DNA of 63,094 bases, counting the filler, from Dimorphilus gyrociliatus (Eukaryota; Animalia; Annelida): NCBI GenBank assembly GCA_904063045.1. It is 4 parts of 4 records of this genome, joined end to end, with 100 filler letters (N's around TTAATTAATTAA, not from the genome) between each part and the next. Parts side by side here need not be neighbours in the genome. Positions count along the whole stretch, not along the records: positions 40,892 to 56,568 come from CAJFCJ010000228.1; 3 more parts are not named here. One strand, given 5' to 3'. A model generated the notes under the pieces. It searched no databases. It worked only from the letters and a program-made list of their open reading frames with translations, and had not been told where the DNA came from. Below, piece after piece: positions 40,892-56,568 of this stretch (its first letter is position 1; each line of letters begins with the position of its first letter). Made by a program: the position numbers and the translations under genes.

Positions 40892-43725
40892 CTACTTATT
40901 CTTATTATATTGAAATTCGATCAACTCCAGAAAAAGGATCGAAAACGCCATCCGCTCTGACGATTAAGTTATATGAACAAGGGAGTGAAAAGTTTATTCG
41001 GGCAGTTCTCCCACAGATAAAACAGGAAATACCTATTGCAATTTTATTCAGAGCATTAGGATTTTTATCAGATAAAGAGATAGTTGATTTTTTAACACTT
41101 AATTCAGAAGATAATAATAGCACTGACACCGCAACAATTACACCACAGGACGAATATTTTACATTTATCAAACCAAGTATTAATGAAGGATCAACAGTAA
41201 ATGATCAAGAATCTGCTCTAGATTTTATAGGGAGAAGAGGCGCCCCTATAGGTGTAAATAAGGAAAAAAGGATAGCATTTGCTCGTTATATTTTACAAAA
41301 AGAATTTCTCCCTCATATTGGTACACGGGAATTTTGTGAAACAAGAAAAGCATATTTTCTAGGATACATGGTCCAAAAACTCTTAAATGTCGCAATGGAA
41401 AGGGAAGAAGTGGACGATAGAGATCACTATGGAAAGAAAAGAATGGATTTGGCAGGATCGCTTCTCGCTTCTTTATTTAAAACCCTTTTTAGAAAGTTAC
41501 AGCAAGAAGTCTCAAAGCATCTTCAAAGATGCATAGAATATAATCGTGAATTTTCAGTGGCTATTGCTCTTAAAACAAATATTATTACACAAGGATTTAA
41601 GTATGCACTTGCAACTGGAAACTGGGGAGAACAAGGAAAAGCAATGCAGTCAAAAAGTGGTGTAGCACAAGCCCTTAACAGATATAACATTGTTTCAACC
41701 CTTAGTCATTTAAGGAGAGTTAATACACCAATAGGAAGGGATGGTAAATTAGCAAAGCCTAGGCAGTTACATAATACTCACTGGGGAATGATTTGCCCTA
41801 GCGAAACACCGGAAGGACAAGCTTGTGGTTTAGTAAAAAACTTAAGTTTAATGGCTTATATCTCTGTCAAGTCATCATCGCAAAGCATTATACAATATTT
41901 AGAAGAATTGGGTATGGAAAACTTAGAAGAAACAAATATTAATAAGATTTCTCAAATGAGCAAGGTTTTTGTTAATGGTCACTGGGTAGGTGTACACTCT
42001 AGTCCAGATAAAGTAATTTTGTTTTTAAAAAGTCTTAGAAAAAGAGGTATATTAAGAAAGGATGTCAGTATTGTTAATGACAACAATAATAAAGAAATAA
42101 GAATATGGTGTGATGCAGGAAGGCCAACAAGACCACTTTTTGTTGTTAAAAATAATAACGAATTAATGATCAAAAAAGAACATTTAATAAAAATAGAGAG
42201 AAAAGAGTTAACCGTTGATGATCTTATCAGATTAGGAATTATAGAATATTTAGATGTAGAAGAAGAAGAATCTGTATTAATAGCACTTAATGTAGGCGAA
42301 CTGGGGAAAAAAGAAAATAGATATACCCATTGTGAGATTGATCCAACGTTAATACTTGGTATATCCGCATCAATAATCCCCTTCCCAGACCATAATCAAT
42401 CTCCTAGAAACACTTATCAATCAGCGATGTGCAAACAGGCTATGGGCGTTTTTTCTACTAATTTTATGATTAGAATGGACACTTTAAGTAACATATTATT
42501 TTATCCTCAAAAACCTCTAGTTACTACTAGAGCTATGAAATTTATGAAGTATGAAGAACTACCAACAGGAATGAATGCAATAGTAGCAATTGCATGCTAC
42601 ACAGGTTATAATCAAGAAGACAGTATTATTATGAATCAAAGTGCGATAGACCGAGGGCTTTTTAGGTCCTTCTTTTATAGAACTTATTCAGATCGTGAGA
42701 GTGAAAGATCCAATATAAGTGAAAAATTTAAGAGAGTCGATAAAACAGTTTATAGAAGAAAGAATCTAAACTATGAAAAGTTAGACGATGATGGAATAGT
42801 TCCACCAGGTGTAAGGGTATCAGGCGAGGACATTTTAATAGGGAAGGTCATTCCAATCAAGGACCCTGCTAGTGATGTAGAACGTTATATTGAAAAGGAC
42901 GCCTCAACAGCTATGAGAAAAACAGAAAATGGTGTTGTAGACACTGTTATTATAACCAGTAAGGATGGATTTAAGTTTGTTAAAGTTAAAGTTAGAAGCT
43001 GTAGAATTCCACAAATGGGAGATAAGTTCGCTAGTAGACATGGACAAAAAGGTACTATAGGTATCTGTTTAAGACAGGAAGATATGCCTTTTACTAAAGA
43101 AGGAATAATTCCCGACATTATAATTAATCCTCATGCTTTTCCGTCTAGAATGAGTATTGGCCATTTAATTGAATGTTTACTAGGAAAAGTTAGCTCACTA
43201 AGTGGAAATGAAGGTGATGCTACCCCATTTTCCGATTTAACTGTCGATCAAATTAGTAAAGAGCTCGAATCTTATAATTATGATCCTTATGGATATGAAG
43301 AGATGTTTAATGGAATGACAGGAAAAAAATGTAAAGCTAAAATTTTTATTGGACCAACTTATTACCAAAGGTTAAAACATATGGTTGAAGATAAAATACA
43401 CGCACGCTCTGAAGGACCTATACAAATACTAACAAGACAACCTTTAGAAGGAAGGTCTAGAGATGGTGGTCTAAGATTTGGAGAAATGGAGAGAGACTGC
43501 ATAATTTCTCATGGATTAGCACTTTTTTTAAAAGAAAGACTTTTGGATGTAAGTGATTCCTATGTTACATATGTTTGTAGTACTTGTGGTTTATTTTGTT
43601 TAACAGAGAGCTGTAAAGGTTGTAATAGCAGAACTGCTAAGAAAATACAAATTCCTTATGCATTTAAATTATGTTTACAAGAGATGATGGGTATGAATAT
43701 AGCACCTCGACTTTTTTTTGACTAA
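40892..43725 (+). CDS. RPB2: RNA polymerase II second-largest subunit, 5'-truncated by the contig edge, microsporidian type
   Basis: Frame open from the contig start (IPIAILFRALG, ALDFIGRRG) through RDHYGKKRMDLAG, CPSETPEG..GLVKNL, GDKFASRHGQKG, YQRLKHMV.DKIHAR, GGLRFGEMERDC; no introns; short Zn-binding tail and end MMGMNIAPRLFFD. Confidence 0.97.
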
Positions 43726-44041
43726 AATTATTTTATAGTAAAGATTTGTTATAATACATACATTCGTATAGTTGTTAAATGACAATTGATAAAATCATTG
43801 AATTATAAAAAAACAATAATATATAATTTGAAGCAATGTTTTTTTATTGTGTTTTTAATGGTTAAGCCTTAAAAATATAAAATTTTTATAAAATGCGCTG
43901 AAACTCAATCTCATGAAAAAGTTTGAAATAAAAACATTTTTAAATATTTTATATTTCAATTAACCTGTAAATATTTAGAAAACTGGCTTTTTCGTTTAAT
44001 TAGACTGTTACAGTATAAACATATTTTTTAAAGAATAAATC

Positions 44042-45148
44042 GGGGCTGGTTTGAAATTCTGCCTACCTTAGGGTAGGCAGAATTTCAAACCAAAGCACTT
44101 TTTTATTTTTATTTTATTGCCCCTTAATGAATAATTTTAATATGGATGATTTATATTTTAGAAATAATAGTGAACTAATTGACTTTTTTGTTGATAATCA
44201 TATTTTGTCGATCTCTAAAGATTGCATATGTGGTAATGATATGAAGCTTATCCCAGTTTCTTCTGTTACTGGTACAAAATTAATCTTTAGATGTAAAAAG
44301 AAAGGTTGTCAAAAAAGAAAAGGTTTAATATCTTTTAATATTGACTTTAGTAAGATGCTTCGAATATTATATCGCCTTATGTCGTCATCTACATATAGAG
44401 ATGTACAAAGGGAATATGATGTTTCTAAAAGTACTGTTTGGGCTATCAAAAAAGCCCTAGAAGGTGTATATCACAATCACCTTGAACAGTATCCTAAAGC
44501 TATTGGTGGACCTGGTGTTATTGTTCAAATAGATGAGACATGTATATGTAGAAAGAAAAAGATTTTACTACCAACAAGTACTCCTGATGATATAAAGGAC
44601 ACTGTTTGGGTAATAGGAGCCATGGAAGAATCTGGCCATCAAAATTTTATACTATGTAATATTCCAAATAGGAAAATCAATACACTTTCAAGCATTTTAG
44701 AAGGAAAGATAAGGGTAGGAAGTATATTAAGAAGTGATGGTCATCCATCTTATCCTGGTGTTGCTAGAAACTTGGGGCTTATACACCAGAAGGTTGATCA
44801 TGACAATGGATTTAAGTCTATTGATGGAGTACACACGAACAACATTGAGGCTCTTTGGTCAAACTTAAAAAGATGTCTTAGGAATGAAAATGGAGTTATG
44901 AGAAGTAATCTAGAACATTGGATAAAGACTTACACTTTCAAAAAAAGATATTTATTTAATGCAACAAATGAGGAATTTAATTCTATTTTTATTGAAATAT
45001 GTAAGAAATTTTTTAATAAATAATTTTTTAATAAATAATTTTTTAAAAAAAAAATTTAAAACATAGGTAGGTACATAGGTACCTACCTTAGGTCGAAAAG
45101 TACACAAGGGTACTACCTTATGGGTAGGCAGAATTTCAAACCAGCCCC
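44042..45148 (+). mobile_element. Merlin (IS1595/ISXO2-like) DNA transposon, apparently intact
   Basis: TIR ggggctggtttgaaattctgcctacc at both ends; 8-bp TSD aataaatc (44034-44041, 45149-45156). Confidence 0.93.
44127..45023 (+). CDS. Merlin DDE transposase, 298 aa
   Basis: Zn ribbon CICG..CKKKGC, HTH, VQIDET, LRSDGH, GVHTNNIEALW, YTFKKR. Confidence 0.92.
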   Translation: MNNFNMDDLYFRNNSELIDFFVDNHILSISKDCICGNDMKLIPVSSVTGTKLIFRCKKKGCQKRKGLISFNIDFSKMLRILYRLMSSSTYRDVQREYDVSKSTVWAIKKALEGVYHNHLEQYPKAIGGPGVIVQIDETCICRKKKILLPTSTPDDIKDTVWVIGAMEESGHQNFILCNIPNRKINTLSSILEGKIRVGSILRSDGHPSYPGVARNLGLIHQKVDHDNGFKSIDGVHTNNIEALWSNLKRCLRNENGVMRSNLEHWIKTYTFKKRYLFNATNEEFNSIFIEICKKFFNK

Positions 45149-47207
45149 AATAAATCTATAAGGTTTTATATCTAATCGATACTGTGAAGTCCAAAAAAAT
45201 AGAGTCTTTTTTTTTGGAAAGTGTAAATATAAAATAAAATTTTATAAGTAAAATGATTAATCAATAAACAAATAATCATTTATACAACCATTTCTTTTCT
45301 AAAAACGTTCTTTTATTTAAAAAATTTAACTTGATGTACGAATAATGTTTGAAAATTTTGATTTATAACTATAAAAAGTCTTTATCAAAGTTTAAAAAGT
45401 TTCAATTATTAAGGGGAAATGCTGTTTTTTAAGTTTAAATGTAATTTATCTTTTTAATAGTGATTTATTGAAATATTTGATATATAATAAGTATGAACAA
45501 CATGATAAAAATAATTTGTTTCCATTTTAAACATGTTAGCGAAAATATTGATATATATATGTGCAATATCTTGTAATTGTAATGGTAGAATAGTTATACT
45601 TAAAAAAAGTGTCTGGAACAGTATATAAAAAAGGTATAATTTACTCCCATAAATTTGCGCTCAAAAATTGTCTGATCAATAATTTTCTAACATAATAATG
45701 ACTCAATATATATCTGTTGCCAACCCCAATACATATGCTGGAGGTTCCACGCACTAAATAGTTGATAAAAACATTGAAACAGAGAATATTCTACTTACAG
45801 TTTTTTGATTGATTCTATAGAGAATATTTGTAGAATTGCTTAAAAAAAAGAGGTAAAATAAAAAAAGAAATAATCAAAATATGGGAACTTTATTAAACCA
45901 CGGATGATTAAAATGTACACACTAAGTCTTCACAAAACAATATTAACTATATAAAGATATTAAAAAGGAAACAACATTTTTTAGGCTGAATTACTAAAAA
46001 TTACCGTCAAAAACAGCTATAATAATGGACGTTATAGATTAAAATATGTTAGAATTTACCTGAATATTCAAAAAAAGAGCATTAGAAGTTCATGGTGTGA
46101 CAAGAAGTCTTATTTAAAATTAATTTGAATAGAATACCATTCTAATACTTTTATATTAAATTAAAAAGGTATACTTTAATCAAATCTCATAAACGTAGAG
46201 TATTCTTGACTATTTAAATTCACGTGAATTTATATAATTTATTTTATTTTTAGCAAAAGCTTTTTAAGATTTGACTTAAAAAATAGTCTCACATTCTTTA
46301 GACTCGTTGAATTTTAATATTATCTTTTTTCTGTGTTAGAAATACATTAAATAGTATAAAAAGCTTTAAAATAATTTGTTTTTAAAAAATCAAATAAAAT
46401 TTATATCTTAGTCAAGACCGCCAATTATTTAAATTTATTATTATTTTAAAGTATTTAAATGTGTATTTAAACATTATTATTAATTGGTATTTCAGCTTAA
46501 AAGCATATTCTATTGTTTTGTTGTAAAGTGAAGGTCTACTTGACTTTTTAAATAGCCTAAGTGACGATTTAAAGTCTAATGATTCAGCCCTGTAAAGAAA
46601 AATTCTATTAGCAATCCTCTATAAGTTCCTATTCTACCAGTAACACTCTAGCTCTCAATAAAATATTTAATATTTTAAATATTTCTATTATTCACATTTT
46701 AACTTCATCTGCATACCAAAATAACTATATTTATCCATCTGTAAACTTAAATCCCAATAAACAGTATTTCATTTAATTCTGATAATGAACACAGTCATTT
46801 GTATTAACTCCTCATAATTCTAGCTATAAAGGATTATATGAGTTATATGAGTATACAATATTTTGAAGAAATAAATCCATTAGATATGATTTTTTAGGAA
46901 TGCTTTAAATAAAAAAACTTCTATTAAAACATTTTTAAACAGTTAATAATACAATTAAATATAATCAAAAATCCCTTGCTATTTTTATACTAGTATATTT
47001 TCCACAGATTAGAAACATCTAATTTATCCATTCTAAATTCTAGTTTTGTACCTTTTATTCTATTTTTTATTTAGATACTTTATTGTACAACTTTGACCTT
47101 CTATTTTATGACCGTTTGATTTATAAATATTCAAAGCTTAATATTAATTTACGATATTTTTTGTTATGTTGGAAGTTTTGAATGATTTCAAAAGATTATG
47201 TTATATA

Positions 47208-48678
47208 CAGTGAGGGACAAAAAAATGGGACACCCTAAAAAATGAGTTTAAAAAAGGTATAGCTAAAATGTAAAATAGTGATGTGGTCTTGTATTAATTA
47301 AATAAAAAATTTTTATAATTCATTATTTTTAAGGTCATATTTTTGTTGGGATTTGATGGATTTTTTAAAAAACAGGGACAAAAAAAATGGGACACTTACT
47401 AAAAAATCCAATTTAATACTTAGTATGACCTCCTTTCATGTTAAATACAGCTTCTGCTCTTCTTGGCATACTATCTATAAGCTTTCTTATATATGCTAAT
47501 GGTATATTATTCCATATTTGGGTTATTTCCTCCTTTAATTGATTGATTGATTTTATGTGTATTTTTTCTAGCTTAGATTCTATAAACCCCCATACGTGTT
47601 CTATTGGGTTCAAATCCGGACTCTGGGCTGGCCATTCTAATAATTTAATGTTCTTTTCGGTGAAAAACTCCATTGTTAACTTTGATTTATGACATGGAGC
47701 GTTATCTTGTTGAAAGATATGGTCTTTTATCAGGCGTTTGGTTCTTTCTAATTCAAAAATATTTGATAATAGACTAATATACTTCATGGAGTTCATTGTT
47801 CCTTCAATGAAAGTTAACTCACCTACACCTTCATAGCTAATATAGCCCCACACCATTACACCTCCTCCACCAAATTTTACAGTCTTTACTGTATTTACAT
47901 CATGGTACTCAGAATTTATTTTTCTGTACACTATAACTCTTTTGTTGCTATTGGATAAGCAAAATTTGCTTTCATCACTATAAATTATTTTTCTAAAAAA
48001 ATCATCACTATTGAATAAAATCTTTTTCGAAAAATTTAGTCTTTGCAGTCTATGTAGACGAGATAAGAAAGGCTTTCTCCGTGCTATTCTAGCATGTATT
48101 CCTCTACTCTTTAAACATCGTATAACTGTTTTTTTTGATACTTGAATATTAGCTTTTTCCTCAAGCTTTCTTGCTAGTTGATTTCCTACTAGTCTCGGAT
48201 TTTCTTCTGATATTTTTTGTAAAACATCTATTTGGTCACTATCAAGCGATAGACGTCTACCAGAACCTTTTTTTCTAAATATATCTCCATTATCCTTGAT
48301 TTTTTTTACAATTCTTCCAATAGTAGATTTACTTATTTGCATTATCTCCGAGATTTTTCTGATGGAATACTTTGCTTTTCTTAATCCTAAAACCTCACCA
48401 ATCTCTATTTTACTAATATGTTTTGCCATAGGGGATAAGTTTTAAGGTATTTTATAAAAATTTTTAGCTCATTTTGTAACTTTTTAGTAAGTGTCCCATT
48501 TTTTTTGTCCCTGTTTTTTAAAAATCCATCAAATCCCAACAAAAATATGACCTTAAAAATAATGAATTATAAAAATTTTTTATTTAATTAATACAAGACC
48601 ACATCACTATTTTACATTTTAGCTATACCTTTTTTAAACTCATTTTTTAGGGTGTCCCATTTTTTTTGTCCCTCACTG
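47208..48678 (-). mobile_element. Intact Tc1 element with ~198-bp IR/DR-type terminal repeats and TA TSD
   Basis: TA|cagtgagggacaaaaaaatgggacac ... gtgtcccattttttttgtccctcactg|TA; the core gggacaaaaaaa(a)tgggacac occurs at both ends of each arm. Confidence 0.95.
47413..48429 (-). CDS. Tc1 transposase DD34E, 338 aa
   Basis: Paired-like HTH, GSGRR, ARRKP, IYSDES, KFGGGGVMVWG, FQQDNAPCH, WPAQSPDLNPIEH; 34 residues between the second D and E. Confidence 0.95.
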   Translation of the reverse strand: MAKHISKIEIGEVLGLRKAKYSIRKISEIMQISKSTIGRIVKKIKDNGDIFRKKGSGRRLSLDSDQIDVLQKISEENPRLVGNQLARKLEEKANIQVSKKTVIRCLKSRGIHARIARRKPFLSRLHRLQRLNFSKKILFNSDDFFRKIIYSDESKFCLSNSNKRVIVYRKINSEYHDVNTVKTVKFGGGGVMVWGYISYEGVGELTFIEGTMNSMKYISLLSNIFELERTKRLIKDHIFQQDNAPCHKSKLTMEFFTEKNIKLLEWPAQSPDLNPIEHVWGFIESKLEKIHIKSINQLKEEITQIWNNIPLAYIRKLIDSMPRRAEAVFNMKGGHTKY

Positions 48679-48761
48679 TATAACATGTAAAAAGTTAAAT
48701 AAAGAAATTAGATTGCAAGATTTTAGTAAAAAAAATACAGATAGAGAAGGTATTAACATAA

Positions 48762-49361
48762 TCAGCTCTTCTCATCCAGTTTTCTTAACTTTTTTTCTTC
48801 TTCAATTTTCCTTAACTCATATGAACATACATCAGCAAAGAATTTAAGCTTATAGAACCTATCATAGTCTTTTAGTTTCATATTTTCTTCAATTGCTTTT
48901 AGTTTTTGTCTTTGGTTCTGAAACCACACCTGAATCGTCCTTGCAGTTAATTTTAATCTTGAGGCCAGTACTTCCCTTTCTTCATTGCTTGGAAACATAT
49001 TATTATTAAAGTAAAGTCTTAAATGCCGATTTTGATAAGAATTCATCACTGTTCTTTTTCTTTTTGGTTGCTGCTTATTATGCTCACAGCTTTGTTTTTC
49101 TTCGCTATCTAGGTCTGGTAAATAGTTGTTTTTCAATGAATTTATCAAGCCAAAGTTTCTTGGGAATTTTTTTGTATACGAACTAATTTCTGATTTTGAA
49201 TTCTTTGAATCTTTGTTTTTTACATCAAAAGAAAGTTTATCTTGGCTTATAAACTTTATTTTTTTGCTAAATAGTGTTCTTTCTGCGACTTCCCGGCTTT
49301 TAGTTTCTTCTACTGATTTAGAATGTTCTGAACTAGCTTTTTGGTAATTTTTAGTGACCAT
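48762..49361 (-). CDS. Homeodomain transcription factor, 199 aa, intronless
   Basis: PKRKRTVMNSYQNRHLRLYF..NMFPSNEEREVLASRLKLTARTIQVWFQNQRQKLK. Confidence 0.9.
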   Translation of the reverse strand: MVTKNYQKASSEHSKSVEETKSREVAERTLFSKKIKFISQDKLSFDVKNKDSKNSKSEISSYTKKFPRNFGLINSLKNNYLPDLDSEEKQSCEHNKQQPKRKRTVMNSYQNRHLRLYFNNNMFPSNEEREVLASRLKLTARTIQVWFQNQRQKLKAIEENMKLKDYDRFYKLKFFADVCSYELRKIEEEKKLRKLDEKS

Positions 49362-50482
49362 CTGTGCTTTTTAGAAAATAATAAATTTATATTGTTTTTT
49401 GAGAATAATATGATAAGAAATATATAGCAATATAATAAATTAATTGCATTTTTTGAGTTAAACACCATATAATATTTATTTTAGCCAACTCTTTGATCAT
49501 AATTGCTTTTTTAATCAATGATTAAATGAAAGATTCCATATTAATATGGTCTTATTAGAAAAACATATTGTAAATAAATACTCATATTGAGTTTTTAAAC
49601 ATTAACTATACTTATAATATTCTATAAAATATATTAAATTTCAATACACAAGTCCTTGTTTGACTGTTTTATATCAATTATTAAAATCTATATTTCTATA
49701 AAAGAGCTTATATTCTATAATATGATAAAAACTTGGATTAGATTTGTTTGGTATATTGTTTACTAGATCTTTTTTTTGTTGGAAAGTGTAAATATATATT
49801 TTACTGGAATTTTTTTAATCAAAATAATAAATACTAGTTTGAGTATTATATATTCATTTTTAATACGGATTTTTGGACATAAAGACAGCTAGTTGAATAA
49901 ATAAATGAAAATAAACATAAAATAAAACATATATTCCCTTTATTTATTTATATAGAAAAATTAGAATATTTTCCACTTTGAGTAGATTGAAAATATACCG
50001 TTTTTGCTAATTTATAATTATCTGAAAAACACCCACTTATTTTTATAGTTTTCTATTTATAATATATTTTCAATTTTGGTTACTTTTTATAATAAGATTA
50101 TTTAAATAAAACATATCTCTCAAACCCAAAAGGTAAAAAAAAATAATCCTATTTAATCAGTTAATTATTTTAGCAATAAATATATACATTCCATAAAAAA
50201 ATAGAATACAAAACAATACTGTTCACTATATTCTTTACAAAAAAGGAAATTGCTTTCCCCCTGTTTAGGATACTTGGCTTTATGATAAATTACTATTTTG
50301 AGAAGGATACCATTTTTATATATTTAGTATGAAATTTCAATTTTTTTGTGTTGATTTATTCAAAAATTAAGTTATATAATATTTTAATATAAAGCTAAAG
50401 TAAACAATTAATAAGTTTCAATATTGACCGTTCTTAATAAATTTAGAATAGTTAATGGTAATTTAAGCATAATATCATTGTA

Positions 50483-51737
50483 TAGGTGGTTCGATCAGCT
50501 TGAGATCTTTTGCAACCAACTTGAGACAAAATAAATACAAATTTTAAACTTTCATCTTTTTTATTTCCCTCCAGATAACTATAAAGGTTTTTAGGTCATT
50601 TATATCCTATTATGGTAACAATAACATCAAACGATCAACTAAGGCTGTTTCTTCCGATGATAGAAAAAGGATCATAGTAAAAGTACTCGAAGGAATGTCG
50701 GCCAAGGCGATACCCGAATCGTTAAGCCTGAAATATAAAACCGTAAACCGATTAATAAAAAAATTTTAAAAACAGGAAATCTCATGAAAGGAAAACAAGG
50801 CGGGAATAGAAGATCTATTCTTACGGCCCAAGAAAAAGAACAACTAACAAGCTGGGTGGATGCCGATTGCTCTTTAACCCTAAAAAAGTTGGTAAAGGAG
50901 CGTGAATTGAAATTTGGCAAGTATCCATCAAAGAGTACTGTTGATAGGACATTACGCTAGTTTCATTTCACATTAAAACAAATAATACATATACCTTATG
51001 CTAGGATAACTGATAGCTGCAAGGAAAAACAAAAAGACTATGTTAGAAGTTATCGTGAGGTGGAATCAGAAAATGAAGATAAAAACTTCATTTTCATAGA
51101 TGAAGTGGGATTTGCTGTGGCCATAAGAACAAAAAAAGGAGAGCAAAAAGTGGCCAGTCACCTATGATGACGGTTCCTTCTACAAGAAGCAGAAATATTT
51201 CTATTGTTGCTGCCATGAATAAGTATGGCATGATTTATCAAAAGATTCATGAAAGATCTGTAAAAGGTGAAGATTTCAAAGAGTCTATTTTGAAAATTGA
51301 AGCAGCATGCCGAAGAAAAGGAGTTGAACCCCCTGTTTTTATAATGGATAATGCTCGAATTCATCATTACAGAGGACTTTGAGACGAAATAAACAGGATA
51401 AATATGACCATAAAATACCTTCCACCGTATTCACCGTTTTTAAATCCTATAGAGAACATTTTTTCAATTTGGAAGAATTTACTAAAAAAGGATAAGCCAG
51501 CGAGTGAATCACAGCTACGAAACTCTATAAAAGAGTTTTAAATAAAACACTACCAACAGATTGTAGCTCATTCTACAGGAAAATGATAGATATAGTAGTA
51601 AAAATAGAAAATAATGAAAGAATTCTTAATTAAAAAGGATAAGTTTTTGAAATATTATTATTTATCTATTAAATTTTATTTAAATTCGACGTATAAATAA
51701 AATTCTAATTTTATCTCAAGTTGATCGAAACCCCCTA
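50483..51737 (+). mobile_element. Decayed IS630-like/Tc1-superfamily DD34E element
   Basis: TIRs tataggtggttcgatcagcttgagat / atctcaagttgatcgaaaccccctata; fragments FIFIDEVGF, RNISIVAAM, FIMDNARIH, YLPPYSPFLNPIE with stops and frameshifts. Confidence 0.85.
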
Positions 51738-51749
51738 TATCCTACGAAA

Positions 51750-52700
51750 AAGTGCCCCATGATAAACTGCTTGGTAAGATCCCAGAGATGGAGGTCTTGG
51801 CATGCTACCGCGCATTTGTTAGCAGATTGTATAGAAGTGTGCAATTAAAAGTACAAATAGCCCTCTATATCAAATAGCTTCTACTATGTTGTGGATAGAG
51901 GCAAGCTTGCCCACACTCTTCTTCTATTACATCTCTATGTTATTGACGTTTTTTAGGAATAAGAGGTATAGAGGCAGATAGGCTTGACTGAAAGAGTATC
52001 TGGACTGTTATTAGAGGGCGTTGAGATATAGCATTCAACCTTATTAAGCTACAATAATGGTTTAGTACATGATAGGGAGCATCCCAGTCACCGGTAGATA
52101 TAAACATACACCATAGTGATCAGGCGACTTCGATGGTGCTGACCTATATCTATTTTGGTATTCATATATCCAAGGACCTGGGAGACGATATCCATCAGGA
52201 TAGAAGGGTGGAAGGGGATGTTTGGCACTACTTCAGTGTCAAACACTTCTGGGGAATCCTTCCTCTGGAATTTACCACAAGGTGTGAATACTCAGACGAG
52301 TACTCATTCCAATATTAACATATGGGGTAGAAACCATTTGAATGAACTCTATCCTATGCAGAAAGTTGTAAAGGATTATGAGCAAAAATGTATCACAAAA
52401 CTTCAACAAATTATCAATGTATAAAGGTTTATATATAGAGATGGTCGATGTGATCACTGCCAGTGTGCAAACCAGAGCCTAAATAAAGTAGAAATACCCA
52501 CGTAATTATATGAGTACCTTCATTGAACCCCTTAAAAGCAAAGAAATTAACATGGGCGACACATATAATCCGATGGCCCATAAGGTATGCGCCTACTGCG
52601 CTAGACAGTGAGGGAAGGCAAGCACCTTCTATTACCAAGCGGAGTCTAGAGAATAGGTAATTCGCTAGGCACTTTAACGGTATCTCAAGGATAAGATATA
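51750..52700 (+). pseudogene. Possible highly decayed non-LTR retrotransposon RT fragment
   Basis: EKVPHDKLLGKI near 51750 and a broken GGRG motif near 52210; higher GC than flanks; weak evidence. Confidence 0.3.
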
Positions 52701-53287
52701 GGTGAAAAATCGCTAAAATGTAAGTACATCATCGATATATAGAGGTACTGGATGCCATTCTCTACCCAAGCTTGCTGAAAATGAATTCCCTTTGTATTTT
52801 ATTGATCATGCTAGAACATTTATTTGATACTTCTATTTTTAATGTATATGTAATGAGTAAAAAATGTAGTCTATCTGCTTTTGTTCTACTGTCCTCGATA
52901 AAAAAAAAGAAATTAGATATAAATCTTTATCATAACAACACAGCGCCGTGCTTTTAGAACGAAGGCAAGGCTTTAATACTATATACATTATTTTACAAAA
53001 ACATCCAACATAAAGCACTAAGTAGTCTTTCGAACCAGTAGAGATAAAATTTTAGAATTCCGAGAATTCTTATTTCAAAAAACAGGAATAAGTGATATTT
53101 AGATGTTTTAGTTAATGTTTTATTTAACGATTCTATTTTTAGTCCCCTCTTAATAAGTTTAACCAATCCTTTTATTGAAATAAATAGAACTGTAGAACTC
53201 TTTAGAGATAAAAATTAAAATGATTACTCAATAGTTAAATACCATTTATTAAAACCCTCCGATTATTAAAAAAGTAGGAGATATTAT

Positions 53288-54385
53288 GGGCTGGTTTGAA
53301 ATTCTGCCTACCCATAAGGTAGTACCCTTGTGTACTTTTCGACCTAAGGTAGGTACCTATGTACCTACCTATGTTTTAAATTTTTTTTTAAAAAATTATT
53401 TATTAAAAATTATTTATTAAAAAATTTCTTACATATTTCAATAAAAATAGAATTAAATTCCTCATTTGTTGCATTAAATAAATATCTTTTTTTGAAAGTG
53501 TAAGTCTTTATCCAATGTTCTAGATTACTTCTCATAACTCCATTTTCATTCCTAAGACATCTTTTTAAGTTTGACCAAAGAGCCTCAATGTTGTTCGTGT
53601 GTACTCCATCAATAGACTTAAATCCATTGTCATGATCAACCTTCTGGTGTATAAGCCCCAAGTTTCTAGCAACACCAGGATAAGATGGATGACCATCACT
53701 TCTTAATATACTTCCTACCCTTATCTTTCCTTCTAAAATGCTTGAAAGTGTATTGATTTTCCTATTTGGAATATTACATAGTATAAAATTTTGATGGCCA
53801 GATTCTTCCATGGCTCCTATTACCCAAACAGTGTCCTTTATATCATCAGGAGTACTTGTTGGTAGTAAAATCTTTTTCTTTCTACATATACATGTCTCAT
53901 CTATTTGAACAATAACACCAGGTCCACCAATAGCTTTAGGATACTGTTCAAGGTGATTGTGATATACACCTTCTAGGGCTTTTTTGATAGCCCAAACAGT
54001 ACTTTTAGAAACATCATATTCCCTTTGTACATCTCTATATGTAGATGACGACATAAGGCGATATAATATTCGAAGCATCTTACTAAAGTCAATATTAAAA
54101 GATATTAAACCTTTTCTTTTTTGACAACCTTTCTTTTTACATCTAAAGATTAATTTTGTACCAGTAACAGAAGAAACTGGGATAAGCTTCATATCATTAC
54201 CACATATGCAATCTTTAGAGATCGACAAAATATGATTATCAACAAAAAAGTCAATTAGTTCACTATTATTTCTAAAATATAAATCATCCATATTAAAATT
54301 ATTCATTAAGGGGCAATAAAATAAAAATAAAAAAGTGCTTTGGTTTGAAATTCTGCCTACCCTAAGGTAGGCAGAATTTCAAACC
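53288..54385 (-). mobile_element. Second Merlin copy, inverted relative to the first; altered 5' terminus, no TSD
   Basis: gggctggtttgaaattctgcctacc at 53288; the other end lacks the terminal agcccc and forms a long palindrome. Confidence 0.9.
53410..54306 (-). CDS. Merlin transposase identical in protein sequence to 44127-45023
   Basis: ORF translations are identical (298 aa). Confidence 0.92.
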   Translation of the reverse strand: MNNFNMDDLYFRNNSELIDFFVDNHILSISKDCICGNDMKLIPVSSVTGTKLIFRCKKKGCQKRKGLISFNIDFSKMLRILYRLMSSSTYRDVQREYDVSKSTVWAIKKALEGVYHNHLEQYPKAIGGPGVIVQIDETCICRKKKILLPTSTPDDIKDTVWVIGAMEESGHQNFILCNIPNRKINTLSSILEGKIRVGSILRSDGHPSYPGVARNLGLIHQKVDHDNGFKSIDGVHTNNIEALWSNLKRCLRNENGVMRSNLEHWIKTYTFKKRYLFNATNEEFNSIFIEICKKFFNK

Positions 54386-54399
54386 AAAGCACTTTTTTA

Positions 54400-56534
54400 T
54401 TCTTCTTTTTCCGATTAAATTTCTTGCTATTTAATGTTGAAGCATAGCTTTCTAAGCTTCCATAAAAGTATTTCAATTTGCGAATATCCACATTGCAATC
54501 AGTTAAATCTACTTCTTTAATATACGGTAATTCAAAAATATATATGATTTCATCTGTTGTTAAAAAACTGTTACCAGCTATTTTAAGACTTTCGATGTTT
54601 CTTAATTTATTAATTGGTAACAATCCTCCTCTGGGTAGCTTTCTCTGTGATAAATCAAGTTCTACTAAATTAAAAAGCTTTAATATAGAGTCTAAATTTG
54701 ATTGATAAATAGAGTTCTTTCCTTTTACCCGTAATTTTTTTAGATTTTTAAGCTTATGAATATCAACTAATGAATTGATAGGTGGCTCACAAAAATCAAT
54801 ACTTAAACTTTGTAGATTAGTTAACTGTGAAATTGCATGATAATCTACATTTTTAAGTTTTTATTGCCAGATAAATTCAAATTTACTAAGCTTTGAAGCA
54901 TTCTGATATTTATTAAATCACCTGTGTTTATATCACAATACTTAGCTTTCAATTTTTTCAGATTTGATAATCTGAATATAGAGTCAAAGTCGTCTTCACC
55001 AATTTTCTTATTATCATTCAGATTAAGATATTCTAATTTATATAATGAATCAATATGTATAATGTCTCCAGTCTTTAAGGCACAATTTTCAATAATAAGT
55101 GTTTTTAAATTTATACATTTCATTATGCTATTTAAGTCTTCATCTCCTAAATTCTTTTGGTTAGATAAATTTAAATATCTAAGATTTTTCAATTTCTGAA
55201 TGTTTATTAAGTCTCCTTTTCGTAAAAGAGCCAGAGAGAGGTCTAAATACCTTAAAGAAGCTCCATTATTATGTGCACTGTAGATGTAAATACTTGATTG
55301 GTCCAAATGTGATTCTTTTGTAAAGAAAGGGATTGTTGCATTATCTTCATTTATTATAGAAACATACTTCATTATTATTAATGTCAGTTTTTTTAAATTC
55401 CCAATGCAGGTTAAAGCTTTATAATCCTTTTGATGTATTGTATATTTTACGGATATCTTTAACTCATCTAGCTTCTCCAGTATTTCAAGATTATCTTCTA
55501 TAACGCCTTCATCCATGGTTTGACACGTAATATCAAGCAATTTTAGGCTTTTAAGATCTCTTATAGTTTCTATAATGCCTTTAGTCAATACAAGAAGCTT
55601 AATTCTTAATGTTTTCAGTTCCTGCATTTGGCAAATATTCGTTAATTTATTAGTAGTGCGGGAAGAAAAGGGTAGAGATAATTTAACCAGTTTCTTACAT
55701 TGAATATTAAGAAGAACATCACAATCTGAATAACTTTCCCCCACTTCAAATCTTTCTAAATTTTCTAGGCTATTAATCAATGATAAAAATTCAGATTCAT
55801 ATTCATAAAGTAAAATCGTCCCAAATATAAGTGTCTTTAGGTTGGTCAGTGCATGAAGCCTGTGTAACTGATAGCCAGATAGTTTGATACAGAATAGGTC
55901 CAATATTCGAGTTCATTTAGATTAGAAATTGCATCTGCAAACTCACTTGGCAATGCGGAGTTAGCAAAGTCAAGGTATTTTAATCTCCTGAGTTTTGAGA
56001 TAGACAAAATTTCTGCCATATTCAAGGCATTTCTTTGGAGGCTTAAAGACTCTAAATTTACCAGTTTATCTATTTCAATCAATGCTCCTTGAGGAAGGAG
56101 CACTCTGATATATCTAATGATGATAAATTAACCAAATTTAATATACTTTTTAAACCATCTGGGTTAAGATTAAAGTTTTCTCTTAAAGAAAGATGTTTAA
56201 TATAACAAAACATTGAGAAATTAAAATTGCAGTGTAAATTTGAAAAACTATCGTTTAAATTTAAAAATTCAAGGCTGTAGATTTTGGATAATTTTTTCAA
56301 AACCTTTATATTTATATTGTAGCTTTTTTCCATGTGAAGTACTTTCAAGTTTTGCAAGCTATCTAAAGATATTAATTCATCGTTTTGAAACTTGTTATTG
56401 TTTAAATTTAAGTATTCTAGGTCTCTAAGATTCATAATTTTATCGTAATAAAACACTCGACTTTTCTTTACTTCTGGCTTAAAGTTTGTCTTAGATTTGT
56501 TAATTCGTTTTAATAGAGATCCCAATCGATTCAT
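54400..56534 (-). pseudogene. Large LRR-repeat protein gene with several single-base frameshifts
   Basis: LxxLxxLxLxxN repeats across ORFs 56079-56534, 55846-56103, 54845-55903 and 54357-54623; frame shifts near 56100, 55900, 54850 and 54660; 3' end abuts Merlin copy 2. Confidence 0.8.
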
Positions 56535-56568
56535 TGGTTTTTGATTTTATTAAGAAAGTTTTTTTGTG

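Follow-up and report, generated by a model that had tools for sequence, protein, structure and literature searches.

A transposon-rich piece of probable microsporidian origin in an animal genome assembly

The window, which is the whole stretch of DNA analyzed here, is 63,094 nucleotides long, and the present analysis concerns its 15.7 kb piece at positions 40892-56568. The piece encodes RPB2, a small homeobox protein, and a leucine-rich-repeat (LRR) protein, and the remainder includes Merlin and Tc1-like transposons and AT-rich spacer DNA (Table 1). RPB2, the homeobox gene, and both Merlin transposases are single uninterrupted open reading frames (ORFs), and no animal-like gene or intron was found in the 15.7 kb. 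Genes of Microsporidia are essentially without spliceosomal introns. The lack of introns on the piece fits membership in this group but is no proof of it. RPB2 is the sole conserved marker on the piece. The Rfam scan of the piece returned no rRNA and the tRNA scan no tRNA, and no polar-tube, spore-wall, or NTT ATP/ADP transporter gene is encoded within 40892-56568.

Table 1. Features of the piece at positions 40892-56568 of the window.
Feature	Position	Strand	Remarks
RPB2, second-largest subunit of RNA polymerase II	40894..43725	+	C-terminal 943 codons, intronless; N-terminal ~200 codons lost at the left edge of the piece
Merlin DNA transposon copy 1, 1107 bp	44042..45148	+	transposase 44127-45023, 298 aa, intact
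AT-rich spacer	45157..47205	.	~22% GC (45152-47203); no ORF of 45 aa or more
Tc1-like DNA transposon	47208..48678	-	transposase 47413-48429, 338 aa, intact
Small intronless homeobox gene, 199 aa	48762..49361	-	resembles microsporidian HD-3
Decayed Tc1/IS630-like remnant	50548..51630	+	transposase over three frames with stops
Higher-GC segment, GC 0.40	51700..52720	.	composition; deviates from the rest
Merlin DNA transposon copy 2	53288..54409	-	transposase 53410-54306, intact; 99% identical to copy 1 (pairwise alignment)
Leucine-rich-repeat gene, ~720 codons	54360..56534	-	Pfam LRR_14, LRR_8, LRR_4

The first-pass annotation described an intronless RPB2, and frame 3 of the plus strand is indeed open from its first codon to the stop, with all seven of the seven Pfam Rpb2 domains. 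The strings quoted from this protein (DRDHYGKKRMDLAGSLLASLFKTLFRK and NIITQGFKYALATGNWG) and its ending (EMMGMNIAPRLFFD) are present in the translation. The shortened zinc tail was borne out by the alignment, in which fungi, Rozella, and Paramicrosporidium have six more residues in this loop. This deletion (CGLFCLxE------xCKGC) is common to the RPB2 of the piece, Vavraia, Pseudoloma, and P0004, and the CGLFCL motif is likewise found in Vavraia and Pseudoloma. The MGMNIAPR ending is the same as in Encephalitozoon, Vairimorpha, Vavraia, and Pseudoloma, whereas Spraguea and Astathelohania have MAMNIAPR.

The RPB2 is microsporidian. Its best matches are all from Microsporidia, with 63-68% identity (Spraguea lophii with 1432 bits, Astathelohania, Encephalitozoon, and Vairimorpha). 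Fungal RPB2 proteins are 55-60% identical to it (1223-1257 bits), and the yeast and mammalian Rpb2 proteins score 1207 and ~1168 bits. Among the best 120 of 7418 matches, there is no metazoan RPB2 except one mislabelled fish entry. The domain set and the length class are the same as in Spraguea lophii, Astathelohania contejeani, Encephalitozoon cuniculi, and Vavraia culicis/Pseudoloma neurophilia, to which the protein is 64-68% identical. The identity to any relative is at most 68%, which is approximately the between-order distance of Microsporidia in the same alignment (Spraguea-Vavraia 68%, Encephalitozoon-Vairimorpha 80%). In the JGI metagenome contigs scanned with RPB2, only distant relatives were found, with 57% identity or less. 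The initial description of the protein as Encephalitozoon-type was too specific, as Spraguea and Astathelohania are no farther from it than Encephalitozoon; a specifically Encephalitozoon-like RPB2 was ruled out by the identity matrix and the trees.

In the maximum likelihood (ML) phylogeny, the RPB2 was placed inside crown Microsporidia with 100/100 support. The careful ML tree, with Rozella, Paramicrosporidium, and four fungi as outgroups, placed it above the Nematocida split (100/98), and a quick 63-row tree also placed it within Microsporidia. The fish-labelled entry, filed under a pipefish, nests with Pseudoloma. In the best trees, the RPB2 leans weakly toward the Vavraia/Trachipleistophora/Pseudoloma clade as its sister (SH-aLRT 91 in the 63-row tree, 76/93 in the ML tree), and an alternative grouping with a Nosema/Enterocytozoon-type clade was not rejected (p-AU 0.26). 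The crown backbone is a polytomy in the careful tree. The named RPB2 matches that were listed and used did not include Trachipleistophora, Glugea, Loma, Dictyocoela, Hamiltosporidium, Anncaliia, Edhazardia, metchnikovellids, or Amphiamblys. The terminal branch is 0.71-0.76 long, and the value of 0.71 is five times the median. This long isolated branch and a full-length identity of at most 66-68% among 5.8 billion protein clusters agree with the earlier suggestion of a possible new lineage. Judged from the RPB2 sequence, the piece would belong to a lineage of crown Microsporidia without close relatives among the sequenced genomes, and this lineage may lie nearest the Vavraia/Pseudoloma group.

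The Merlin elements noted in the first pass are present as two IS1595/Merlin-type ORFs, which encode identical proteins in 1.1-kb copies. The transposase exceeds the gathering score of Pfam DDE_Tnp_IS1595, with an E of 3.9e-11. An IS1595/IS1016-like DDE transposase, terminal inverted repeats, and a target duplication, the last two seen in copy 1, place the element in the Merlin superfamily, whose target-site duplications are 8-9 bp in length. Copy 1 is bounded by terminal inverted repeats of 26 nt (GGGGCTGGTTTGAAATTCTGCCTACC), and the 8-bp target-site duplication on its two sides is perfect (AATAAATC, 44034-44041 and 45149-45156). At its left end, the terminal repeat recurs further in and in inverted orientation (44072-44092). 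The transposase-proximal end of copy 2 is rearranged: it has neither the outer GGGGC nor the target duplication, and a 44-nt palindrome is found there instead (54318-54361 / 54366-54409). The Merlin family is microsporidian: the only named relatives of the transposase are from Dictyocoela muelleri and Vairimorpha necatrix. The identity is 38-49% to the named microsporidian copies and 58% to one further protein. An exact look-up of the Merlin and homeobox proteins gave no contig on record, and for their best relatives without a name, the contig look-ups led to run accessions with no informative context.

The Tc1-like element has nearly identical terminal inverted repeats of ~170-200 nt, which start with CAGTG, and TA at both flanks. 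Each terminal repeat contains two copies of GGGACAAAAAAA(A)TGGGACAC. The transposase matches Pfam DDE_3 (1.2e-18) and HTH_Tnp_Tc3_2 (1.6e-15), and the element combines the DDE_3 and HTH domains, long inverted repeats, and TA target of Tc1/mariner. In the Atlas, it falls among Tc1-like transposases and has generic Tc1 kin only. In the older remnant, Pfam HTH_SB, HTH_32, and DDE_3 are found on separate open pieces. The perfect target duplication of Merlin copy 1, the 99% identity of the two Merlin copies, and the nearly identical ends of the Tc1-like element indicate recent transposition inside this genome.

Merlin and Tc1/mariner are the dominant superfamilies in the large genomes of Anncaliia algerae, Nosema bombycis, and Spraguea lophii (Parisot et al. 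2014, PMC4202319). The Merlin elements of the piece resemble those of large-genome microsporidia in their IS1595-like DDE transposase, in the short terminal inverted repeats, and in the 8-bp length of the target duplication. Unlike the known microsporidian copies, they have the extra inner copy of the terminal repeat, which gives a 21-bp hairpin at one end. The TA target and CAGTG ends of the Tc1-like element are common to the Tc1/mariner elements of Anncaliia, Nosema, and Spraguea. A transposon-rich genome with kilobase-scale intergenic DNA had been proposed, and four transposon copies in 15.7 kb and a 2-kb ORF-free spacer are in line with it. The layout of genes, young and old transposons, and AT-rich spacers is typical of larger transposon-rich microsporidian genomes.

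The homeobox gene is intronless, as had been noted, and its 199-aa ORF matches the Pfam Homeodomain with an E of 2.5e-16. It is 41% identical to HD-3 of Nosema bombycis CQ1 (EOB12984.1, 176 aa) over 99 residues reaching past the homeodomain, and both proteins have a single homeodomain in the C-terminal half. The N-terminal halves are unalignable, and the likeness to HD-3 is one of pairwise similarity. N. bombycis HD-3 is the one listed match extending well past the homeodomain and the only informative one, as the exhaustive search was swamped by multi-homeodomain animal proteins. One Logan protein is 65% identical over the homeodomain. The homeobox and LRR proteins gave no taxonomic signal in the Atlas. 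The LRR gene is split into four reading frames (56534-56082, 56127-55849, 55912-54848, and 54860-54360), the last of which extends into the end of Merlin copy 2. An LRR coding sequence had been reported and is present, whereas its tie to microsporidian LRR expansions is by analogy, because no relative better than E 8e-6 was found among 5.8 billion protein clusters. The gene appears to be lineage-specific and fast-evolving.

The GC content of the spacers across the piece is 18-27%, and GC3 is uniform over all ORFs (0.21-0.30). The segment of higher GC has no Pfam or Rfam match and may be a decayed mobile-element fragment. It was also considered as a non-LTR reverse-transcriptase remnant, a candidate without Pfam support. 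This segment and the LRR gene in four frames are two features at odds with a simple parasite-genome picture.

The RPB2 stretch is present in several marine-related datasets. The share of its words is 0.72-0.96 in four runs of organism A, 0.90 in organism B, and 0.27 in organism C, and it also occurs in one marine metatranscriptome and one marine sediment metagenome. One further organism A run has next to no RPB2 words. The homeobox stretch co-occurs in runs X1, X3, X4, and X9. The RPB2 contig of X1 is identical to the piece, that of X3 is one base off, and those of X6 and the RNA library X8 are ~98% identical; the X8 contig spans the 3' end of RPB2. The X1 and X3 contigs extend 557 and 442 nt beyond the left edge of the piece. 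A contig of 6.4-6.8 kb was also seen in X1 and X3, and it may stem from a diverged second copy or from another parasite. Two organism labels, from different studies and years, have near-identical RPB2 with 1 difference in 2.7 kb, and RPB2 of ~98% identity comes from a third label and from the marine metatranscriptome. Among the variants from three organism labels and the metatranscriptome, 20 of the 21 listed differences are synonymous, which indicates living lineages and not decaying inserts. Taken with the intact 943-codon frame, this proportion shows ongoing purifying selection. The parasite sequence recurs over 2017-2025 under the three organism labels, so study material probably exists.

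We consider the piece to be a nuclear genome fragment of a living microsporidian that was co-sequenced with the animal naming the assembly, with a probability of roughly 0.9. The first-pass annotation had read the piece as microsporidian and not of animal origin, and this is supported by the best RPB2 matches, the 100/100 placement in the tree, and the named Merlin kin. The microsporidian would be a cobiont and would most likely live as an intracellular parasite, either in the named animal or in something living with the animal. On the piece, its functional intronless RPB2, its small HD-3-like homeobox gene, and its fast-evolving LRR gene would be interspersed with cut-and-paste transposons that were recently active (the two Merlin copies and the Tc1-like element), older transposon debris, and very AT-rich spacers. 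We infer that the whole piece comes from one free-standing parasite genome, and the named animal is probably the host.

Microsporidian-like DNA in screened host assemblies has sometimes proved to be inserted (PMC12558613), and the piece could be such horizontally transferred DNA, integrated in the animal nuclear genome with no current infection. However, the RPB2 is intact and under purifying selection, and an animal would have no need of this polymerase subunit. The young transposons with intact transposases of microsporidian kinship, the 15.7 kb free of animal-like genes and introns, the near absence of RPB2 words from one run with the same species label, and the RNA-library contig over the RPB2 3' end also speak against integration, which we regard as very improbable. 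An origin from another AT-rich eukaryote, such as an early-diverging fungus or a protist, or from the animal's own RPB2 is practically negligible. RPB2 is so highly conserved that fungal identity still reaches 55-60%, and a branch of this length can mislead placement, but Rozella, Paramicrosporidium, and the four fungi all fall outside the fully supported microsporidian group. The best RPB2 matches without a true metazoan entry, the absence of introns, and the microsporidian Merlin kin argue in the same direction.

A real microsporidian that does not infect the named animal may also account for the piece, derived from some other member of the sample or culture (food, or a co-cultured or ingested invertebrate) or from cross-sample carry-over. 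The near-identical sequence under two organism labels from separate studies and years, the related sequence in bulk marine metatranscriptome and sediment samples, and the lack of any feature tying the piece to a host are compatible with such a source. The two labels may, however, represent one host or close relatives, and a persistently infected host lineage or culture would be expected to yield the occurrence in at least five organism A runs and under related labels over 2017-2025. We regard another source as unlikely, and it carries more weight than integration. For the co-sequenced microsporidian, a more specific picture is possible and is offered tentatively. It may represent a family-level or deeper marine lineage of Microsporidia without a sequenced genome, with a large transposon-rich genome and active Merlin and Tc1 elements, persistently infecting two or three related non-arthropod marine invertebrates and also detectable in open marine sediment and plankton data.

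The recovery of microsporidian genomes from host genome projects is an established practice (Darwin Tree of Life; PMC12558613, PMC10845963, PMC11016177), and all 40 of the 40 cobiont genomes recovered in these studies are from arthropod hosts. Like the Darwin Tree of Life cobionts, the present parasite was sequenced incidentally with a host and recognised through conserved markers. Unlike the arthropod-host cobionts, it appears in marine-related data, has no close sequenced relative, and is known here from 15.7 kb alone. A cobiont flag is advisable for the piece and presumably for many other contigs of the assembly, so that parasite genes and transposons are not annotated as animal. The RPB2 filed under a pipefish is an example of such mislabelling.

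Among sequenced microsporidia, parasites of arthropods, vertebrates, and nematodes are strongly overrepresented. At an order-like distance from all of these, a marine lineage would help settle the poorly supported backbone of crown Microsporidia. If the family-level marine lineage is real, its genome would close a gap in a phylogeny that rests almost entirely on parasites of those three host groups. A transposon-rich genome of this kind would also be informative for the debate over whether genomes expand or are reduced and over the exchange of transposons with hosts (PMC4202319).

The RPB2 frame is open from the very first codon of contig C (CAJFCJ010000228.1), and Rpb2 domains 1 to 7 (Pfam) are found within it in order. 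RPB2-region contigs of two public runs extend 557 and 442 nt to the left of the contig edge. The missing N-terminal ~200 codons are due to this edge and not to an intron. All the RPB2 strings that the first-pass annotation quoted for a microsporidian parasite are found in the translation, thus confirming that observation. We searched the protein against a collection of 5.8 billion protein clusters and obtained 7418 matches, the best of which were exclusively from Microsporidia: Spraguea lophii (the best match; 1432 bits, 66% identity), Astathelohania contejeani (1405 bits) and Encephalitozoon cuniculi (1392 bits), followed by Vairimorpha, Ordospora, Vavraia, Pseudoloma, and others. The first fungal matches appeared at ~1257 bits (55-57% identity). 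Against solved structures, yeast Rpb2 scored 1207 bits and mammalian Rpb2 ~1168 bits.

Features of contig C (window positions)
Feature	Position	Strand	Description
RPB2 (C-terminal four fifths)	40894-43725	+	one open frame, 943 codons, stop at 43725
Merlin copy 1	44042-45148	+	26-nt terminal inverted repeats; perfect 8-bp target-site duplication AATAAATC
Tc1-like element	47208-48678	-	TA flanks, CAGTG ends, intact 338-aa transposase
Second Tc1/IS630-like element	50548-51630	+	decayed, spread across three frames
Merlin copy 2	53288-54409	-	transposase-proximal end lacks outermost bases (GGGGC) and duplication
LRR coding sequence	54360-56534	-	~720 codons, ATG at 56534, four frames

In maximum-likelihood trees (63 rows, and a second, careful tree of 34 rows under LG+C20), the RPB2 of contig C lies inside Microsporidia with 100/100 support and in the clade above Nematocida with 100/98; Paramicrosporidium, Rozella, and fungi fall outside. 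Its terminal branch is long (0.71-0.76 versus a median of 0.12-0.15), and its top identity to any aligned sequence is 68%, which is the separation between different microsporidian orders in the same alignment. The Vavraia/Pseudoloma clade is the sister in the best trees (SH-aLRT 91 in the 63-row tree; 76/93 in the 34-row tree). When the protein is instead constrained to group with the Nosema/Enterocytozoon-type clade, the log-likelihood drops by just 6.6 units (p-AU 0.26), leaving the Vavraia/Pseudoloma sister relationship tentative. The zinc loop, CGLFCLTE------SCKGC in the alignment, has a 6-residue gap and a CGLFCL motif common to contig C, Vavraia, Pseudoloma, and the unnamed protein P0004. 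The loop is full-length in fungi, Rozella, Paramicrosporidium, Spraguea, and Astathelohania, and only two residues shorter in Encephalitozoon and Vairimorpha. The shortened Zn-binding tail, which had been likened to the Encephalitozoon type, is therefore real, but it marks some microsporidia only and is not specific to Encephalitozoon. As a rare change, the deletion agrees with the Vavraia/Pseudoloma placement. A relative from the cluster search, P0019, is labelled in UniRef and nr as a Doryrhamphus excisus (pipefish) 'LOW QUALITY PROTEIN'; it groups beside Pseudoloma neurophilia with 100% support in both trees and is one more microsporidian RPB2 filed under an animal.

The homeobox frame, both Merlin copies, and the LRR sequence reported by the first-pass annotation are each present. 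The homeobox protein (199 aa) is 41% identical to Nosema bombycis HD-3 (176 aa) over 99 residues, and the alignment continues beyond the homeodomain. The two 1.1-kb Merlin elements, in opposite orientation, are 99% identical and encode an identical intact 298-aa transposase of the IS1595/Merlin type. The 8-bp target-site duplication is a hallmark of Merlin. Both copies repeat the terminal sequence in inverted orientation 4 nt further in (44042-44092 in copy 1), and at the transposase-proximal end this gives a hairpin of 21 bp. In copy 2 the hairpin is extended to a 44-nt palindrome (54318-54409), which occupies the place of the outer GGGGC and of the target duplication; such a structure looks like the product of fold-back repair at a broken element end. 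Named relatives of the transposase are only microsporidian (Dictyocoela muelleri, 43-49%; Vairimorpha necatrix, 38-40%), and one unnamed protein reaches 58%. The intact Tc1-like element has long near-identical inverted repeats holding doubled binding-site-like motifs. This transposon content matches earlier descriptions of large microsporidian genomes, where Merlin and Tc1/mariner are the dominant DNA transposons (PMC4202319).

In contrast to RPB2 and three transposases, which are intact, the LRR gene is readable only with three frame switches (near 56100, 55900, and 54855), indicating either a pseudogene in a fast-evolving family or assembly indel errors. Its final frame ends (at 54360) within the terminus of Merlin copy 2, whose insertion may have cut the gene short. 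The LRR protein had no detectable relatives in the 5.8 billion clusters. The GC content of contig C is 29% overall, ~26-34% in coding regions and 18-27% in spacers; no ORF as long as 45 aa lies in one 2-kb spacer. GC3 is 0.21-0.30 in all ORFs, which fits one single genome. Scans of 40892-56568 found no rRNA or tRNA. A 1-kb segment (51700-52720) has 40% GC and no long ORF, gave no match in Pfam and Rfam searches, and could be a relic of foreign or mobile DNA.

We scored public sequencing runs by their share of words from the RPB2 stretch. The share was 0.72-0.96 in X1, X2, X4, and X5 (organism A, one study, 2020), 0.90 in X3 (organism B, 2017), 0.27 in X6 and X7 (organism C, 2019 and 2025), 0.27 and 0.15 in the marine metatranscriptomes X8 and X10, 0.19 in a marine sediment metagenome (X9), and 0.00 in X11 (organism A, another study, 2024). 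The homeobox stretch and spacer also occur in X3, X1, X4, another organism-A run, and the sediment metagenome; the two ends of contig C therefore travel together. Over the RPB2 stretch, contigs from X1 match contig C exactly, the one from X3 shows a single base difference in 2.7 kb, and X6 pieces show 97.8-98.4% identity. X6 also carries the Merlin family, in pieces listed at ~90-97%. A 1061-nt contig from X8, an RNA library, covers the last 990 nt of RPB2 and 74 nt downstream at 98.7% identity. It stops 74 nt past the stop codon (43726-43799), with a 4-nt deletion at 43754. This end is consistent with a short 3' untranslated region, which microsporidia usually have, although an RNA library can contain DNA. 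X1 and X3 each also contain one 6.4-6.8 kb contig, at least as deep as the RPB2 contigs, that meets the stretch at just two short collinear spots (41187-41204 and 44017-44037); the contacts could be fortuitous, or the contig could stem from a second, diverged copy or from another parasite.

Host genomes do contain insertions of microsporidian DNA (PMC12558613), and contig C could be one of these. However, 20 of the 21 differences listed within RPB2 are synonymous third-position changes, the pattern that purifying selection leaves among sister species or living strains. This bias would be absent from a dead insert, so the variants argue for living lineages. We keep the insert as a reading of low probability. 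A living parasite may also infect something else in the sample instead of the named animal. No annotated protein in the 5.8-billion-cluster collection closely matches this RPB2, which fits an unrecognised parasite, short of proof.

Microsporidian genomes are now routinely found inside host sequencing projects: one study obtained 40 from arthropod hosts (PMC12558613), and tools for recovering them from host data exist (PMC11016177). What is new here is the lineage, which by its RPB2 stands at an order-like distance from every sequenced microsporidian. The lineage is also marked by its association with marine data and by its young transposons.
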